Shown here in pieces: positions 37,564 to 44,733 of a DNA stretch of 64,000 nt. Positions within the stretch are counted from its first letter, which is position 1; each line of letters starts with the position of its first letter. The stretch lies in sequence record MF498774.1; one strand, written 5' to 3'. The translations under genes and the position numbers were made by a program. Under the pieces are notes generated by a model that was not told the origin of the DNA, searched no databases, and saw only the letters and a list, made by a program, of their open reading frames with translations.

Positions 37564-38484
37564 TTACCCCATAATAATTGGATCTGGGCCAGCCAACAGA
37601 AGCAATTCCTCTCGAAGGGTCTCAATTTCTTGTTTGGCTTCTTGGATTAGTCTAGTTCCGTCAACAGTTACTCCACCGGGGAGTTGCATCCCTTGGTGTT
37701 TAGCCATTATGTTCCCCCAAACCTCTTTAACGAACGCTGTGGACATATCTTTAACCCATCTGTTGTTATATACCTTCTGGTCTGGGAAATCGTTCCTTGC
37801 GCTTCCTATGACGCTTTGGGGGAGTTTCTTGTATGGGTTAGACCATTTATTTTCTAAATCCGATGCAGGTACACCGTGACCTATTGGTAAAGCACTACCT
37901 ATATCGTTAAATGCGTATTCGTCAAGGTCTACGAAGTTTTGAACATATGCTTCAATAACCATCACATCACCTTTTTTGAGGTTGTTGTGTGTGATCTGTA
38001 GAATCCCAGATTTGGTATCAAAATCATAATCCGGTAGTGGATTTAATTGGTCTTGTAGGAGTTTCTGATAGGAACTAAATGCAGCAAAATATCCAACGGA
38101 ACCGATTGTCCCAAAAGGTCCATGGTAGCAAGAACCAACGCCACTCGTTGCTAACCCAGTAATGAAACTAGCAAACCAGTTTAGAGGAACACCACCACCC
38201 AACAGAGTCATATTACCGACCATACTACGCAGAATTCTAGTTACTGCGAATACTGGGTATTCACTCAAATCGATATACCCGGTCATGGCTTGTTCTTCGG
38301 TTAGAATACAGGTTATAAAGGCCCGGTTTAGTGCATCGTGGTGGTAATCTTTATAAAGTTCAAGAGCCCGCCCGATACTGTCATAGATCTGAGTTTCTGT
38401 AACCTCAATATTTATAATTGGAGCACCTAACCGACGAAGAATATTATCTTTTAGTTCTTTAGGGTTATTACAGGTATTATACAT
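37564..38484 (-). CDS. gp13: Neck protein gp13
   Basis: NPKELKDNILRRLGAPIIN, YNNRWVKD and KHQGMQLPGGVTVDG; late promoter at 38513-19. Confidence 0.96.
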   Translation of the reverse strand: MYNTCNNPKELKDNILRRLGAPIINIEVTETQIYDSIGRALELYKDYHHDALNRAFITCILTEEQAMTGYIDLSEYPVFAVTRILRSMVGNMTLLGGGVPLNWFASFITGLATSGVGSCYHGPFGTIGSVGYFAAFSSYQKLLQDQLNPLPDYDFDTKSGILQITHNNLKKGDVMVIEAYVQNFVDLDEYAFNDIGSALPIGHGVPASDLENKWSNPYKKLPQSVIGSARNDFPDQKVYNNRWVKDMSTAFVKEVWGNIMAKHQGMQLPGGVTVDGTRLIQEAKQEIETLREELLLLAGPDPIIMG

Positions 38485-38521
38485 TTTATCTTCCTTTAAT
38501 AGTTTACAATGGTATTTAGAG

Positions 38522-38555
38522 AAAAGCCCCGAACGAATAAACGAACGGGGCTTTT
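38522..38555 (-). terminator. Terminator ending the 12-wac-adhesin-47aa operon
   Basis: AAAAGCCCCG-14 nt-CGGGGCTTTT. Confidence 0.75.
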
Positions 38556-38557
38556 AA

Positions 38558-38701
38558 TTATTGTTCTTTATTTTTGTTAGCCTCTTTATCTTCTTCATTC
38601 TGCTTCTGTTTTTTGGTGATTGCTTCCGCCGCCACCTTAAGCAACTGAGTTAGAATTTCGAGACCTATTGTCCTAAAGAATAAAAGTACAGCGGTTTGCA
38701 T
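38558..38701 (-). CDS. Small amphipathic/charged protein (47 aa, not in ORF track)
   Basis: AAGGGG SD; MQTAVLLFFRTIGLEILTQLLKVAAEAITKKQKQNEEDKEANKNKEQ; fills the gap between the 498-aa gene and the terminator. Confidence 0.65.
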   Translation of the reverse strand: MQTAVLLFFRTIGLEILTQLLKVAAEAITKKQKQNEEDKEANKNKEQ

Positions 38702-38712
38702 TTTAATGCCCC

Positions 38713-40209
38713 TTAAGATATTTGGATCCTAGTTGAGCGAGTGGTTACTTGACCATAACTGTTCTTATAAATGGCGTAGTAGAAAATTGATGTGTCTAGA
38801 GTTGGGGTAACTTCTATCTCTAGATTTTTAGAATTACCTACTTCAACACCCCTTGAGGTTTTCCATTGAACTGTGGAAAATCTATCACAATCCGATTCTA
38901 TCACGACCGTATCACCAACTTGCGCGTTATATATAACTTGCGGTTGTTTCGTTATTTTAGGCGCAACCGTACTCCACCAAATTGTATCACCGACGATATC
39001 AAGAACCAGTTTTCCATCAGTAGATACCAATTTTCCATTACCCTGATTTGAAATATTAAATAGATGACTGTTTCCATCCATGTAAATTTCAAATTGTTCA
39101 ATGGTGATGTTATTACTATTTAACCCGAATACAGTATTGAGCCCTGTATCAAGACTAAGATATGGATCTGTTATTCTTGCGTAGACTTCACCGTTTACAT
39201 ACAACCTTATATTTTGAGCAAATCCGTTAGATACATCAAACCAAACAGATACACCAATACTGTTATTTCTTGGTAATGGTCTTTTCAATGGTTTGGTGTG
39301 ATAAACACCATCAGGAGTTTTAACCCAGAATGTGTTAGTTTCTAGATTTATGCCCATACCAGTAGAAATACCACCAACGTTTTTTGAAGCTATCACTAGT
39401 TCTGTAGCGATATCACCAATAACAAGGCCACCAGAAACTTTATGTGTCTTGTTCGCAACCATCAAAGAACCAGTGGTAGAGAATCCAGCGTCTCTATTTA
39501 AAATAATTGCTTCGTTGGTTAAAACGTGGGGGGTTGGTTGATAATCGATCAGGATATTTGTATTTGTAACCATAGGTGAATCAAAAGAGAAATCACCATT
39601 TGTGTTATATCTAACTCCAACACCAAAGTTAAATTGTATTAGACAGTCTTTCTTTGCGGTGAAAGTAGAGTATATACGGGTTCTCTCATCACCAATTAAT
39701 GGATTATTATCAAATTTAGTTTTAAATGTTAGATAATTATCAATGGGGTCACCATTGTCCATGTATATATCAGCAAGTACACCACTATGAACCAACGTAA
39801 GATCGTTGTTTTTAACCATAACGCTTGCGGTATAAGTTTTTCCAGCCTTTAACGAAATACGGGTTTGGAAGAACATTCGACTATCAATAGTTCTGAATGT
39901 ATATCCTTTCGTATTTTCATTATCTTGGTTGAAGCTTATAGCAAAAGCGTTATTTCCCGTATTTGTCGAGTTATTATAAACGGTATAGCATGGTGGAACG
40001 TTTCCAATAACAACCCCGTCAGAATAACAAAAAATATCAGTACCATTCAACATTCGACTATTTGCTAATAGGTTTTCGTCGCCAAGGTCATAAGCTCTAT
40101 GCCATGCCCCATTAGAAAAAACCCACGGTACGGACCTATGCCAGTTATTTTTATAAATGGATGGGATGGTGTCATGCACCACCCCATTTTTATACACTTT
40201 GTTAGCCAT
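38713..40209 (-). CDS. Putative whisker-associated adhesin (aromatic N-terminal anchor, CBM-like, LamG-like, Ig-like; 498 aa)
   Basis: NLLANS...LKAGKTYTASVMVK...DYQPTP (CBM-like), RLYVNGE (ConA/LamG-like) and APKITKQP...VQW...YYAIY (Ig-like); 11 nt downstream of wac. Confidence 0.65.
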   Translation of the reverse strand: MANKVYKNGVVHDTIPSIYKNNWHRSVPWVFSNGAWHRAYDLGDENLLANSRMLNGTDIFCYSDGVVIGNVPPCYTVYNNSTNTGNNAFAISFNQDNENTKGYTFRTIDSRMFFQTRISLKAGKTYTASVMVKNNDLTLVHSGVLADIYMDNGDPIDNYLTFKTKFDNNPLIGDERTRIYSTFTAKKDCLIQFNFGVGVRYNTNGDFSFDSPMVTNTNILIDYQPTPHVLTNEAIILNRDAGFSTTGSLMVANKTHKVSGGLVIGDIATELVIASKNVGGISTGMGINLETNTFWVKTPDGVYHTKPLKRPLPRNNSIGVSVWFDVSNGFAQNIRLYVNGEVYARITDPYLSLDTGLNTVFGLNSNNITIEQFEIYMDGNSHLFNISNQGNGKLVSTDGKLVLDIVGDTIWWSTVAPKITKQPQVIYNAQVGDTVVIESDCDRFSTVQWKTSRGVEVGNSKNLEIEVTPTLDTSIFYYAIYKNSYGQVTTRSTRIQIS

Positions 40210-40220
40210 CGTAAACCCTT

Positions 40221-43200
40221 TTAGTTGATGAATTCGAAGAACACATCACCTTCTTTAGGACTGGTCGGTGCGTCTGTAGCAAAATCACCGTAGTAATACG
40301 CTCTTGTCCACTGACCATCTTGTCTTACGTACTTGTTTCCGTCTGCTGGTGCTTCGAAACTATCCTTTGTGAGGACTTTATCGTTATTGATTGTTACCTC
40401 AGATGTGGTAATACGAACCGGTAGATCGGTGTCACCAATTGCGATAAACTTTTCTGTAGAAGGTTGCGATATACTAATTATGTTCTTATCGACATTATTT
40501 ACCTGTGTGGTAATACCGAAACTATTATTGGCACCTACTTCTGCAAGCTTGAGGTTAGTTACCTTACCGTCAAACTTCATGAACGTTCTACTATCACCAA
40601 TAACCATTAGCTTATCGACACCAACTGTATCCACCTTGGCTACGTTATATCCACCAATGATGAAATCGCTGGTTTCACCAACAGAAACATCCTTGGTTGG
40701 GTCTATACCGTCATGGATTAGAGTCCATTGCCCACCCTTACGAGCGTAGAAATTCGCGTTGTTTGGTGCGTCATGTGCGTCGGTCCAAACTTTCTTAGCA
40801 TCAGAACCAACACCAACAAACAGATTCCCAGTAGAATATACATTCACTGGTGTGGTTGTGTCGCCGATCACTATTTTGGTTTGGGTACTTTCTAAAAGAG
40901 AACCATAAGATGTAGAAATTTTACTTTCTAATTTGAAATCGGATACAGTACCACGAAGGTTTATTTTCCCTGTAGTTCCACCAATTCGAGTTGTTACGGT
41001 TGCAGAATCAACGGTAAATGCAGTAATCGTACCACTATTGGTTTTTGCCATTATAGATACGTTTTCTGCTAGGGTTATATTTCTTTCGCCTACGGCTTGC
41101 CAGAAACCAACACCATCGTCATTTACCCGAGCGTATGCCAATCCGGACTGTGGTGCATCACCAATAATACCAGTACCAGAACCACCCTGTTCAACGACCA
41201 TCCATTGGTTGTTCTTACGAGCGTAAAAACTACCATCTGCGGGTGCATCCATACCTTGGTGCCAAACCTTAAACCGATCAACCCCAGTACCTTGAATATA
41301 AAGGTCCGTTGCAAATACGTTAGTAGTTTCAATATCACCGTATGTCAATATTCCACCAAAGTTATTGACCACGTTTAGATGTTTACCCATACCAACATTC
41401 ATCTTAAACGCTTTGTCTTGGTCCATAATCAATTCGCTGACATTTCCCTTAAATGCGAGGTTTGTATTAGCAGAACCAATATTTATTGTAGTGTTATCTA
41501 ATTTAATAACATCTGCGCCTGCATAACCAATTACCGCATTCTGGTTTAGGGTAAATCCATTCTCTGGGTTAACGTCGGTGATATATTTTTTGTAGTTCCC
41601 AATATGCAGAACATCAAATTCACCGGTTGGTGTGTTATACTTGAAAGAATCGATATCCTTACCAACCATAACTATATTCTTATCACTCTGACCAACTTTT
41701 ATAGTTTGATCGGTAGAGCCAAGAATAGTTTTCCCATATTTTCTGATATCAGAGGTTGTATCAAGAGAAATATTTCCGATAATGTCGCCGACTATACGGA
41801 GTTTGGTTGTTCCGTTATGACCAAAGGTCGGGATATATTTCCCATCAGAACCAGTAGAATAAGAAACAAGTGTGGTTCCGTCGATGGCGGTAATCTTATT
41901 GTTATCACCAACCACAAAGTTAGTGGTAAACAAATCTCGCCATACCCAGTTAGCACCATCATATTCTCGCGACCATACAGCACCAAGCCGAGTTTCTGTT
42001 GGGTTAGGGATATATCCAGCACCATTCTTATAATCACGGTACATCTGTTCATACATATCTTTCGATGCTTGATATGAACCAATTCTACGGTAATCGTCGT
42101 CAGCGACGTTTTTTGTCCCTTCTACCTTGATAACCAAACCTGTGTTTGGATTACCTACGGTATTTTGTAGATCCTCAATAGAAGTTCTATATTCGACGTT
42201 AACAGTAGTTGATATACTCGAAACACGACCATCAAGATCTTCGAAATGTTCTTTCTCTCTCTGGTCTACTTCTTTAACTTTTCCCTGCAATCCATCTAGA
42301 GGACTAGATCCTAGAATACCTTCGTTATTCTCCATACGGACACGTAGATCATTAATTCTACCCCAAGCGGTGGTATCCAGTGTGGAATCACTAGCCGAAC
42401 CAAGAGAACGAGCCAAGTCATCAGACAGACCCTCGGTTTGTTTGGCGATACCACTAATATAATCTACGTCTTTCTTGACATGTAAAGAATAATCGTATAG
42501 ATTACCTACGGTTTGATAAGAATCGGTTTGTACATCAAGATACTGGAGAGGGAATTCACCGTATCCAGTGTGTTCTACAAGTTCTTGAACCAAAGGTGAA
42601 TTTGTTTCGTCGGCCATTTCTAAATCGCCGATACGAGAATAAATGTTCCTTGTTGGATCAGGGTCTTGTCCAAGTTCGGTTCTAATCTGGTTAACTTCTT
42701 CCCTCAAAGATGCAGGAGTTGAGTCTTCCCACCATTTTTCAAGAGAAGTAACACGAACATCAAGGTTGACACCAGTGTTATAGTTACGTTCGATCTGACC
42801 TTTCACCCCCGAAGAAAGTGAGCCGGGTGATGGAACACCATCAATATCAAAATCTTTATAATTACCCAACATTTTTTTGATATGAAGGTCATCTGCTCGG
42901 AGAGTTCGGAATCTAAGAGATGGATCCCCAACTCCGATATTATCTGAAATTGACTGGATTTTTGCGTCGAGGATTACATCGGTTTCTTTTATTTCTTCAA
43001 GGATTCCGCTATGGACATCCATTTCGGTTTCCAAATCACCAACTCGTTGATATAAATCTCGCCCATCACCAGCATTAATTATATCATCATGAATATTCAC
43101 CTTGTCGATAACTTCCGACATCTTAGAAAGGATTGTTTCTTGGTTTTTATCCAATGTCTCTACGTTAGCAGAAATTTGAGTAGAGGGGCGGTTTAAAACG

Positions 43201-43346
43201 CCCCCTTTATCACCAACAATATAAGGATCTGCACCTTGTGGTTGCTCACCATTTTTAATCCATTCAACCTGTTTTTGACCAGAACCAGCAACAGGCATAT
43301 CAGAAGTATATTTCAGGTCATCCAATACAGGTTTAATAATTTCCAT
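40221..43346 (-). CDS. wac: Fibritin (whisker/collar) with long multi-foldon C-terminal extension (1041 aa)
   Basis: LDDLKY...EWIKNGEQPQGAD...LNRPST..NVETLDKN matches the T4 fibritin N-domain; segmented coiled coil; between genes 12 and 13; late promoter at 43378-84. Confidence 0.92.
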   Translation of the reverse strand: MEIIKPVLDDLKYTSDMPVAGSGQKQVEWIKNGEQPQGADPYIVGDKGGVLNRPSTQISANVETLDKNQETILSKMSEVIDKVNIHDDIINAGDGRDLYQRVGDLETEMDVHSGILEEIKETDVILDAKIQSISDNIGVGDPSLRFRTLRADDLHIKKMLGNYKDFDIDGVPSPGSLSSGVKGQIERNYNTGVNLDVRVTSLEKWWEDSTPASLREEVNQIRTELGQDPDPTRNIYSRIGDLEMADETNSPLVQELVEHTGYGEFPLQYLDVQTDSYQTVGNLYDYSLHVKKDVDYISGIAKQTEGLSDDLARSLGSASDSTLDTTAWGRINDLRVRMENNEGILGSSPLDGLQGKVKEVDQREKEHFEDLDGRVSSISTTVNVEYRTSIEDLQNTVGNPNTGLVIKVEGTKNVADDDYRRIGSYQASKDMYEQMYRDYKNGAGYIPNPTETRLGAVWSREYDGANWVWRDLFTTNFVVGDNNKITAIDGTTLVSYSTGSDGKYIPTFGHNGTTKLRIVGDIIGNISLDTTSDIRKYGKTILGSTDQTIKVGQSDKNIVMVGKDIDSFKYNTPTGEFDVLHIGNYKKYITDVNPENGFTLNQNAVIGYAGADVIKLDNTTINIGSANTNLAFKGNVSELIMDQDKAFKMNVGMGKHLNVVNNFGGILTYGDIETTNVFATDLYIQGTGVDRFKVWHQGMDAPADGSFYARKNNQWMVVEQGGSGTGIIGDAPQSGLAYARVNDDGVGFWQAVGERNITLAENVSIMAKTNSGTITAFTVDSATVTTRIGGTTGKINLRGTVSDFKLESKISTSYGSLLESTQTKIVIGDTTTPVNVYSTGNLFVGVGSDAKKVWTDAHDAPNNANFYARKGGQWTLIHDGIDPTKDVSVGETSDFIIGGYNVAKVDTVGVDKLMVIGDSRTFMKFDGKVTNLKLAEVGANNSFGITTQVNNVDKNIISISQPSTEKFIAIGDTDLPVRITTSEVTINNDKVLTKDSFEAPADGNKYVRQDGQWTRAYYYGDFATDAPTSPKEGDVFFEFIN

Positions 43347-43380: not shown

Positions 43381-44733
43381 TTAGGTTGTTTGGTATATGT
43401 CATTAACACCCCAAACATGCCATATAATACAGTTGTCACCCGTGGTATGGAAATAAGTACCATTAGCGTTAAACCTACCAATCCACCAAGTAGAATCGGT
43501 GTCTGCAATCCACCAAGCGTTAGCGAAATTATCTTGAAGGATAGAAATTTGAGCCTTCGATATATAGTTAGACTTCATATGTCTACCATCATCACCAGAG
43601 GATACAACTATTAACCCATCGTAATTCCACCACGGTTGTGACATATTAAAGTCACCACTTTTATGACCACCATATGGAGCAGCATTAAAAATCAATTGTC
43701 TATCAGTTCTATTAAGAGTTACTGCACTTCCACGATTAACCTTTCCATTTATTTGGTTTTGTTTATCCTCGAATGCTCCAACTGCCCAATCATATCTAAC
43801 AACCGCATTAGGTGAACCATCTTGGGGATTTGTAAGATATATATTTGGGGTAATCAATGCACCGGTCATTGTTCCCCCAGTTTTTGCAACTAAGGTTGTT
43901 GCTCCATGAGAACTTAACGCTTTATTCGTTGCCCCTTGCACAGCAACGTCTGTCAATGCAACAATACCCCACTGGGAAGACGATGCAATTGGAAGAGTTG
44001 CTGGGCTAATGGCTACGTCAGTTGCAGTACGGGCATTAGACTCGGCTTGAGTTGCCATTTTTACTGTACCAACTCTTGATTGAGTTGCACGAGTCTCAAT
44101 AAAGCCTTTCGGGCTAACTGCTACACCGTTATGTAAAGCCGCATTAATTACTGGGGATGGGGAAATCTTAACTATCCCAGAGGTCAATTCAGTTGCACCG
44201 GAATTTGCAGTAACTGCGAACTTATCTATCATTGCCTTAACAACATCAGGACTTGTTGCAGTAGTTGAATCAGTCCCTTGTTGTCCAATGGTAATCGTCG
44301 ATAATTTCAACGTACCTGCTTTTGTGGTAGAACCAATTGCTTTTGTTCTGATGATATCCCATATACCAGCCGTATTAATGCCTATAGATGCGCTTGCTGC
44401 TGTTTCTAGACGTTCCGCGCTGGTAGCGTACCTAACTAGACCCTTAACCGTTTCTGATGCATCTGGGCGCACCCATTTGGCTTGTAGGGTCTTGGGAGTA
44501 ACGATTGCATCAGCCACGGTTCCTGCCAATACTTCCGCTTCCGTCGCAATCCTGAGAATACCCATTTTTGTTTCGGTCGCTTTCATATCCTCATACCTTC
44601 CAATTGCATGGGGTTGTATGAGTTCAGCCATTTTTTGTACATCATTAGTTGTTGCTGGGAAATTAGTGGTGCTAGGATCTAGCACCACATCAACAGCTTT
44701 AGAACTAATATGTTGTTCTGTATTATTAATCAT
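43381..44733 (-). CDS. gp12: Short tail fibre gp12 (450 aa, non-T4 tip)
   Basis: NNTEQHIS...DPSTTNFP, ATETKMGILRIATEAEVLAGT..AIVTPKTL repeats. Confidence 0.92.
   Translation of the reverse strand: MINNTEQHISSKAVDVVLDPSTTNFPATTNDVQKMAELIQPHAIGRYEDMKATETKMGILRIATEAEVLAGTVADAIVTPKTLQAKWVRPDASETVKGLVRYATSAERLETAASASIGINTAGIWDIIRTKAIGSTTKAGTLKLSTITIGQQGTDSTTATSPDVVKAMIDKFAVTANSGATELTSGIVKISPSPVINAALHNGVAVSPKGFIETRATQSRVGTVKMATQAESNARTATDVAISPATLPIASSSQWGIVALTDVAVQGATNKALSSHGATTLVAKTGGTMTGALITPNIYLTNPQDGSPNAVVRYDWAVGAFEDKQNQINGKVNRGSAVTLNRTDRQLIFNAAPYGGHKSGDFNMSQPWWNYDGLIVVSSGDDGRHMKSNYISKAQISILQDNFANAWWIADTDSTWWIGRFNANGTYFHTTGDNCIIWHVWGVNDIYQTT

Follow-up and report, generated by a model that had tools for sequence, protein, structure and literature searches.

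The wac locus of Aeromonas phage AS-yj

ORF498 is an open reading frame (ORF) of 498 amino acids (aa) that directly follows wac, the fibritin neck whisker gene, in Aeromonas phage AS-yj (Straboviridae, Emmerichvirinae, Ceceduovirus). The window analysed here is a stretch of 64,000 nucleotides (nt), bases 1-64000 of MF498774.1. On its minus strand the genes are arranged in the order gene 12, wac, ORF498, orf47 and genes 13, 14 and 15 (Table 1). An original prediction, made from the sequence alone, placed a multi-domain adhesin gene 11 nt after the wac stop codon and suggested that it provides the whiskers with a receptor-binding tip. The whiskers of T4 are considered to help assemble the long tail fibres and to sense the environment for them; they are not counted among the binding organelles. 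The ORF is present on the minus strand with an ATG start; the interval proposed for it, 38713-40260, includes in addition the final ~40 nt of wac, the ORF itself occupying 38713..40209. The strings quoted from its N-terminus, the string RLYVNGE and the string quoted from the C-terminus of wac all occur in the translations. We argue below that ORF498 most likely encodes a partner protein dedicated to fibritin, one that nucleates its folding and probably remains at the tip of the whisker; to this reading we give a probability of about 0.55.

The spacer between wac and ORF498 is too short for a promoter or a terminator. A strong intrinsic terminator (-19.6 kcal/mol, z -6.0, equally stable shuffles 0/200, U-rich 3' side) is found only after orf47, and wac, ORF498 and orf47 therefore form a single unit that ends ahead of gene 13. 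This terminator was located by reading the sequence and then folding it; a generic sigma-70 promoter and terminator scan missed it and was otherwise uninformative. The 8-base T4-type late-promoter consensus has 10 matches in the window against 6.3 expected, which is not significant, and no conclusion is drawn from it. Judging by this arrangement, ORF498 shares a transcript with wac among the late structural genes, and its translation is probably coupled to that of wac. Small ORFs of phrog_20541 or phrog_20154 also lie directly upstream of gene 13 in ZPAH1, Aeh1 (Aeh1p221), Ahp1, VmeM-32 and one metagenomic contig.

ORF498 is a real gene. Between AS-yj and CC2 it shows 24 synonymous and 5 non-synonymous differences, a non-synonymous to synonymous ratio (pN/pS) of 0.06. 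The corresponding values are 0.04 for wac and 0-0.05 for gp13-15, and ORF498 is therefore under purifying selection like its structural neighbours. The single protein returned nothing useful from Pfam, NCBIfam and PDB sequence searches. Its residues 1-498 span positions 1-499 of the phrog_9363 profile (E 2.1e-247), and tblastn aligns 98% of the query with Aeh1p218 (NP_944096) at 37.5% identity (E 6e-97). By sequence, ORF498 is an orthologue of Aeh1 gp218. Homologues were found by tblastn in 41 of 50,697 phage records, every one of them annotated as 'hypothetical protein'. These records cover the Aeromonas CC2, 65/ZPAH1 and Aeh1/phiAS5/PX29/Ah1 groups, Cronobacter phages S13 and LPCS28, Citrobacter phage Ci1 and Vibrio phage vB_VmeM-32. 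At the protein level a word-index search retrieved 7 relatives and an exhaustive profile search 24, full length in 7 cases; the remainder are either partial family members or proteins unrelated except for a match to the Ig-like (immunoglobulin-like) domain.

The homologue begins 6-17 nt after a wac gene of 1014-1124 aa in every lineage examined. This adjacency is seen in Aeh1, S13, VmeM-32, 65, Ci1, Ahp1, ZPAH1 and CC2 (eight lineages, four host genera) and on two metagenomic contigs. A recognisable wac N-terminus is present in 484 phage records; wac residues 890-1041, used as a tblastn query, return the identical 41 records found with ORF498. The earlier claim of a separate, conserved multi-domain protein tied to wac is thereby borne out, the same 41 records holding both the Aeh1-type wac tail and the gene. 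It had also been stated that no gene lies between wac and gene 13 in T4, and this holds for T2 and Vibrio phage nt-1, where gene 13 follows wac directly.

Earlier work had already described the gene family, its conservation, a function for it and its association with wac. Letarov & Krisch (Ecol Evol 2013, PMC3797505) described gp218 homologues directly after wac in all Aeh1-type genomes. According to unpublished data in that paper, Aeh1 fibritin expressed alone is insoluble and forms inclusion bodies; co-expressed with gp218 it is soluble, withstands trypsin and gives oligomers that resist sodium dodecyl sulphate. The authors reported gp218 to be necessary for soluble, trimeric fibritin, named it a fibritin-specific chaperone, and argued for a possible contribution of the Aeh1 fibritin itself to host recognition. 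The idea that a separate gp218-type protein forms a binding tip is absent from their paper. Because gp218 rescues fibritin biochemically, the two proteins are likely to be in direct contact. The chaperone activity is reported for Aeh1 only and would extend to AS-yj ORF498 by orthology.

The published reading is also the first alternative to ours: ORF498 would be a pure assembly chaperone that trimerises and folds fibritin in the cell, dissociates and is absent from the virion, as T4 gp38 and gp57A are. Fibre chaperones are typically encoded directly downstream of the fibre gene, and the strong purifying selection on ORF498, together with the lack of host-linked variation, speaks for this reading. 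T4 gp38 and gp57 trimerise gp37 (gp38 literature); here too the gene lies beside the fibre gene, and in Aeh1 the fibre is insoluble without gp218. ORF498 is however much larger than T4 gp38, gp57A and other tail-fibre assembly chaperones, matches none of the known families (T4 gp38/gp57A, Tfa), and has predicted extracellular-type binding domains for which a transient chaperone would have no obvious need.

Domains of ORF498 and of the long fibritin

ORF498 was modelled with AlphaFold2 (AF2) from a 7-sequence alignment, giving a mean predicted local distance difference test score (pLDDT) of 68, i.e. medium confidence. Its N-terminal segment is conserved and is predicted to be unstructured in the monomer. 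Identity between clades is highest at residues 21-60 (0.53 vs 0.24-0.35 elsewhere) and lowest in the distal domains (0.24-0.32). Conservation and structural confidence thus run in opposite directions along the protein. Residues 1-86 are a candidate wac-binding region. That the best conserved part of ORF498 is the segment expected to contact wac is also consistent with a chaperone. The N-terminus had been described as rich in tryptophan and tyrosine, and the enrichment is real but modest: tryptophan, tyrosine and phenylalanine together make up 16% of residues 1-45 against 10% of residues 87-498.

The fibritin on the other side of this putative interface begins like that of T4. The wac family profile matches T4 fibritin (2bsg, 3j2o) over residues ~7-410 (E 1e-68), and helices are predicted over residues 57-443 at low confidence. 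The Pfam Fibritin_C family covers residues 388-474, in the middle of the protein. Beta strands are predicted throughout the extension that follows, again at low confidence; the AF2 model of the full-length monomer has a mean pLDDT of 44.6 and was used for secondary-structure trends only. Four foldon-like motifs are spread over the C-terminal half, so the long fibritin resembles a string of modules with a foldon-like hairpin at the end of each. Two of the four motifs are recognised by PDB chains that contain a foldon, at profile positions 696-724 and 1001-1017.

Behind the last motif lies a C-terminal tail, residues 1014-1041, where identity between clades reaches 0.62. This is the maximum of the fibritin, compared with 0.37 in the neck-binding N-terminus and 0.20-0.28 in the shaft. 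In the AF2 monomer the tail has a pLDDT below 50 and is without secondary structure. No Pfam or NCBIfam model matches it, and the label of a 'PxxPxxGDxW' fibre motif, applied to the wac C-terminus earlier, is unconfirmed and is not used here. The tail is a candidate docking or nucleation site for ORF498. The wac tail and ORF498 residues 21-60 are each the best conserved part of their protein, as would be the signature of an interface, and both of these conserved termini are modelled with low pLDDT alone, whereas the other ORF498 domains are modelled confidently.

Some relatives depart from this fibritin architecture. In the wac protein of VmeM-32 (L003:2613-5984) the first foldon-like motif is immediately followed by more than 100 inserted residues that the other seven lack, and the same phage has a gp218 homologue without an Ig-like domain. 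The wac C-terminal query matches two places in Ah1 (MG250483.1 / NC_055733.1) and in avDM12-TAAL (OP380604.1); in Ah1 the match falls on a feature labelled 'wac_2', and in both phages the fibritin may be encoded by a split or a partly duplicated gene. A fibritin-like metagenomic protein of 821 aa (P0041) combines Fibritin_C with BNR and Sortilin-Vps10 families (beta-propeller, sialidase-like) in precomputed Pfam matches, and is a further whisker protein with a possible glycan-directed C-terminal head.

Distal to the N-terminal segment, ORF498 is predicted to contain two beta-sandwiches. A jelly roll similar to carbohydrate-binding modules (CBM) had been proposed at ~45-228. A sandwich is indeed predicted, at ~88-216, but the residues up to 86 do not belong to it (pLDDT <50). 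Its Foldseek matches include CBM-containing CtXyl5A, CBM40 and BACOVA_03559. The second sandwich, at residues 231-411, matches laminin LG4-5, Gas6 LG, galectins and concanavalin A-like/LamG phage proteins, and the viral models matched by ORF498 as a whole are concanavalin A-like/LamG and Ig-like phage proteins. The LamG-like region proposed originally therefore stands at the level of a predicted fold (AF2 and Foldseek) but not as a Pfam match at E<=1. The LamG and CBM matches have Foldseek probabilities of ~1.0 and template-modelling (TM) scores of 0.15-0.4, which are low because the matched proteins are multi-domain; given high probabilities but low TM-scores, 'LamG/CBM-like' is taken as a fold-level prediction only. 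From the predicted lectin-like and Ig-like domains, a role of ORF498 as a binding subunit at the whisker tip is plausible.

The C-terminal domain is Ig-like, and this sequence assignment is solid. The family profile matches tandem Ig_3/I-set arrays over residues ~412-498, in agreement with the ~415-498 given originally. The S13 and Ci1 homologues reach Pfam Ig_2/Ig_3, and the AS-yj protein itself stays below the Pfam thresholds. The best PDB sequence match is 9c2d_S, the Hoc-like decoration protein gp20 of Shigella phage Sf14 (E 2.9e-13), and is confined to the Ig-like region (profile 421-503 vs chain 290-370). The domain is missing in the homologue of Vibrio phage VmeM-32 and in a metagenomic homologue (P0011). 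At the sensitivity of tblastn no second copy of it exists in the AS-yj genome, and BLASTP shows that the extra ~95 C-terminal residues of another homologue (P0010) are not a second Ig copy.

Hoc-like proteins (T4 Hoc, Sf14 gp20, PDB 9C2D chain S) share this Ig-like sequence type. According to the literature their Ig-like domains extend outward from the virion, and a role in sensing or binding the environment is assumed for them. ORF498 could also be a virion decoration protein bound away from the whisker tip, on the capsid as Hoc is or on the collar, its linkage with wac reflecting shared late expression only. The closeness to Sf14 gp20 and the single copy of the domain in the genome would fit this. 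ORF498 differs from Hoc-like proteins in having one Ig-like domain instead of three, two additional sandwiches and no detectable capsid-binding domain, and in being tied to wac: it co-occurs strictly (41/41) with one wac C-terminal module, not with a capsid type. The joint conservation of the wac tail and the ORF498 N-terminus and the rescue of fibritin by gp218 also argue against binding elsewhere, and we rate this as very improbable, the least probable of the readings considered. Ig-like modules on the whisker itself have a precedent in RB43 fibritin, where 1-3 Ig-like domains lie within the wac polypeptide; in AS-yj the module would come from a separate protein. Whisker Ig-like or adhesin-like modules for accessory, reversible binding have already been proposed (literature on RB43 fibritin).

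A gene cassette between wac and gene 13

The homologues of Aeh1, Ahp1, Ci1 and S13 have an extra C-terminal tail of ~30 residues. The genomes that encode these tailed homologues are those with a further gene behind, whose N-terminal ~78 residues belong to phrog_23703 (the Aeh1p219 family); the AS-yj protein and genome are without both. In S13 (S13_093) and Ci1 the further protein continues with phage tail repeats. The translation of S13_093 shows foldon-like motifs, and the Ci1 protein has a weak, sub-threshold BclA_C-like match at its C-terminus. On one metagenomic T4-like contig (L010), wac is followed, ahead of gene 13, by the gp218 homologue (603 aa), a 133-aa ORF, a protein of 902 aa that combines a fibritin-like segment with phrog_23703, and a protein of 347 aa that matches Laminin_G_3 weakly. 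First place in these cassettes always goes to the gp218 homologue, and the small hydrophobic ORF (phrog_20541/20154) is usually last. Because of the extra genes in relatives, the interval between wac and gene 13 is a variable fibre-gene cassette.

Aeh1p219 was described in 2013 as without homologues and as a possible pseudogene. It does have relatives, in Ahp1 (phrog_23703, E 6e-61) and in the N-terminal ~78 residues of the fibre-like proteins of S13 and Ci1; no significant similarity was found between Aeh1p219 and AS-yj wac. Further along, phage 65 (GU459069.1, L005:7646-8502) has no gene 14 annotated between genes 13 and 15 despite a gap of the right size, which is probably an annotation omission.

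Table 1. Genes, domains and motifs at the wac locus of AS-yj (positions in the window), and Aeh1p219-type genes of relatives
Feature	Position	Strand	Basis
ORF498, ATG start, 498 aa	38713..40209	-	ORF list and translation; GenBank ATI17680.1 'hypothetical protein'
ORF498 residues 1-86, conserved N-terminal segment, predicted unstructured in monomer	39952..40209	-	AF2 pLDDT 23-41
ORF498 residues 28-44, predicted beta-hairpin	40078..40128	-	AF2 strands 29-32 and 35-38
ORF498 residues 87-230, first predicted beta-sandwich (CBM/jelly-roll-like)	39520..39951	-	AF2 strands 88-215, pLDDT ~57-89; Foldseek
ORF498 residues 231-411, second predicted beta-sandwich (LamG/concanavalin A-like)	38977..39519	-	AF2 pLDDT ~70-92; Foldseek
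ORF498 residues 412-498, Ig-like domain (Ig_3/I-set type)	38716..38976	-	Profile matches, PDB
wac, Aeh1-type long fibritin, 1041 aa	40221..43346	-	phrog_9687 E=0; PHROG 'fibritin neck whisker'; Pfam Fibritin_C
wac residues 1-443, T4-like neck-binding N-terminus and helical (coiled-coil) shaft	42018..43346	-	PDB profile match; AF2
wac residues 475-1041, beta-rich extension missing in T4 fibritin	40224..41924	-	Motif positions; PDB profile; AF2
wac foldon-like motif, residues 700-715	41202-41249	-	Motif position
wac foldon-like motif, residues 730-749	41100-41159	-	Motif position
wac foldon-like motif, residues 859-874	40725-40772	-	Motif position
wac foldon-like motif, residues 998-1013	40308-40355	-	Motif position
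wac residues 1014-1041, C-terminal tail behind last foldon-like motif	40224..40307	-	Between-clade identity; AF2
wac-ORF498 spacer, 11 nt, AAGGG Shine-Dalgarno-like element	40210..40220	-	Sequence read
orf47, 47 aa, last gene of wac transcription unit, hydrophobic N-terminal half and charged tail	38558..38701	-	GenBank ATI17679.1; phrog_20541 E 2e-33
Intrinsic terminator upstream of gene 13, closing wac-ORF498-orf47	38522..38555	-	RNA fold
Gene 12 (short tail fibre), neighbour upstream of wac	43381..44733	-	phrog_910 and GenBank annotation
Gene 13 (neck protein), neighbour downstream	37564..38484	-	phrog_211 head-tail adaptor and GenBank annotation
Aeh1p219-type genes	L001:7594-8199, L007:6614-7237, L002:7550-8761, L006:6512-7459, L010:9293-12001		phrog_23703

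A proposed fibritin partner at the whisker tip

The orthology with gp218, the obligate link to the Aeh1-type wac tail, the single transcription unit, the purifying selection and the Ig-like domain are established. Aeh1 gp218 and ORF498 correspond in full-length homology, PHROG, place after a wac of ~1040 aa, conserved N-terminal segment and domain order. We hypothesise that the conserved, unstructured N-terminal ~60-86 residues of ORF498 bind the conserved wac tail and the last foldon-like element. This binding would nucleate or stabilise trimerisation of the wac C-terminus so that the ~1000-residue fibre can fold, a step that co-expression demonstrated for Aeh1 (literature) and that orthology suggests for AS-yj. 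ORF498 would then most likely stay as the distal subunit of the whisker, showing two lectin-like sandwiches and a Hoc-type Ig-like domain, and the displayed domains might bind surface or environmental glycans in a weak and generic way. In relatives, the gp218 homologue appears to be the first link for the fibre-like proteins encoded behind it.

What speaks most for retention in the virion is, in our view, the kind of domains present, the fact that the Ig module can be missing, and the way further fibre genes in relatives go along with the C-terminal tail. Several points speak against a pure chaperone. At 498 aa, with two sandwiches predicted to be lectin-like and an Ig-like domain of Hoc type, ORF498 does not resemble the fibre chaperones that are known, and it matches no chaperone family in Pfam, NCBIfam or PHROGs (phrog_9363 only). 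Phage Ig-like domains sit, according to the literature, on proteins that face the outside. The distal domains are under purifying selection and are not obviously needed by a transient helper, and in relatives an extra C-terminal tail accompanies extra fibre genes behind the homologue. We consider it rather unlikely that ORF498 is a chaperone and nothing else.

The original prediction compared ORF498 with the gp38 adhesins of T-even phages, which it took to dock on fibre ends through aromatic N-termini. The attachment of gp38 to gp37 is, however, described as electrostatic, not aromatic (gp38 literature). The gp38 proteins of T2, T6 and S16 are, like ORF498, encoded immediately after a fibre gene, and the logic we propose is shared: N-terminal docking on the end of a trimeric fibre by a helper that is retained as the tip subunit. 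A gp38-like attachment scheme is a reasonable functional analogy, but there is no relation in sequence or fold and no adhesin-like diversification. In the gp38 literature the protein is monomeric, ~260 aa long, and composed of an N-terminal attachment domain, a beta-helix and a polyglycine-II sandwich with hypervariable loops. ORF498 has 498 aa, consists of two beta-sandwiches and an Ig domain without hypervariability, and has the neck whisker as its partner, not the long tail fibre. ORF498 may work like T2-type gp38 but is not a member of the gp38 family.

In its strong version the original prediction made ORF498 a gp38-type receptor-binding adhesin, that is, a second, specificity-determining host-recognition system on the neck. 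The gene position mirrors that of gp37-gp38, the N-terminus is conserved while the distal domains are more variable and of predicted carbohydrate-binding-type fold, and the suggestion by Letarov & Krisch concerning host recognition by Aeh1 fibritin points the same way. PDB sequence searches with the protein and with the family profile, and the top 50 Foldseek PDB matches, contain no gp38 chain. The features that define gp38, a beta-helix or a polyglycine sandwich with glycine-rich motifs and hypervariable segments, are missing. The region 38400-40400 is 98.5-100% identical to that of 14 other CC2-like records (hosts A. salmonicida, A. hydrophila and A. dhakensis). Across these three host species the ORF498 proteins of the 15 CC2-like records are 99-100% identical and their Ig domains 100% identical; the low pN/pS given above agrees with this. 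In the relative S13, adsorption is abolished by a mutation in the lipopolysaccharide core (rfaC), and the authors credited tail-fibre proteins (literature). As ORF498 does not diversify between phages of different Aeromonas hosts, it is not a classical host-range determinant, and the strong version is very improbable. The adhesin interpretation as a whole is partly supported.

Several points weigh against the fibritin partner that stays at the whisker tip. The strongest are the lack of virion data and the published 'chaperone' label: the sole experimental statement on gp218 is that it is a chaperone, and this is based on unpublished Aeh1 data (PMC3797505). No virion proteomics or structures of AS-yj, CC2, P19, 65, Aeh1, phiAS5, S13, LPCS28 or their genera were found in the literature searched, so tip retention is a hypothesis. 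Two very large protein searches, covering billions of proteins, include no wac-gp218 fusion among their matches. The LamG/CBM assignment comes from a medium-confidence AF2 model and low-TM Foldseek matches, and Pfam lectin and CBM families give no match at E<=1 in any of 8 family members, which match only Ig families. The lack of diversification between phages of different Aeromonas species and the low profile-profile probability of the hairpin likeness described next count on the same side.

ORF498 residues 28-44 and wac residues 1005-1021 are the only profile-profile match between the two families (hhalign E 0.044, probability 1.2%), and 8/16 residues are identical in BLASTP (E 0.008). The wac segment runs from the last foldon-like hairpin into the beginning of the tail, and AF2 draws a 4+4 hairpin at both places. 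This likeness is weak and is treated as a lead only. If followed, it would make gp218 family proteins permanent tip subunits that dock by a foldon-like N-terminal hairpin completing the terminal foldon-like element, and the whiskers would become composite neck fibres. This extension of the retained-partner proposal is possible but doubtful.

As the gene family is already in the literature, the value of the present analysis lies in a functional hypothesis and not in gene discovery. What it adds is the layout of the domains, the conservation of the two termini as a pair and the pattern of the cassette, and with these the tip-subunit hypothesis becomes testable. The annotation of 41 records could change from 'hypothetical protein' to 'fibritin partner/chaperone, gp218 family', a chaperone role having been given to the Aeh1 homologue in 2005/2013. 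Should ORF498 be a chaperone alone, its size and construction would be unusual for one, and the result would chiefly improve the annotation.

A whole branch of T4-like phages has a fibritin twice the length of that of T4, always with an ORF498-type partner gene, and this branch includes phages studied against fish and food pathogens (Aeromonas, Cronobacter). If composite neck fibres are formed, the six whiskers of Aeh1-type phages of Aeromonas, Cronobacter, Citrobacter and Vibrio would display lectin-like and Ig-like domains, and gp218-type proteins would in some lineages also be adaptors for fibre proteins (gp219 / phrog_23703 family). The phages would then possess a second, neck-borne attachment apparatus built on the principle of gp34-37 and gp38. 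If the partner is kept at the tip, it would allow neck-borne binding to surfaces or mucus-type glycans, and the interval from wac to gene 13, with its variable cassette, would amount to a second fibre locus.

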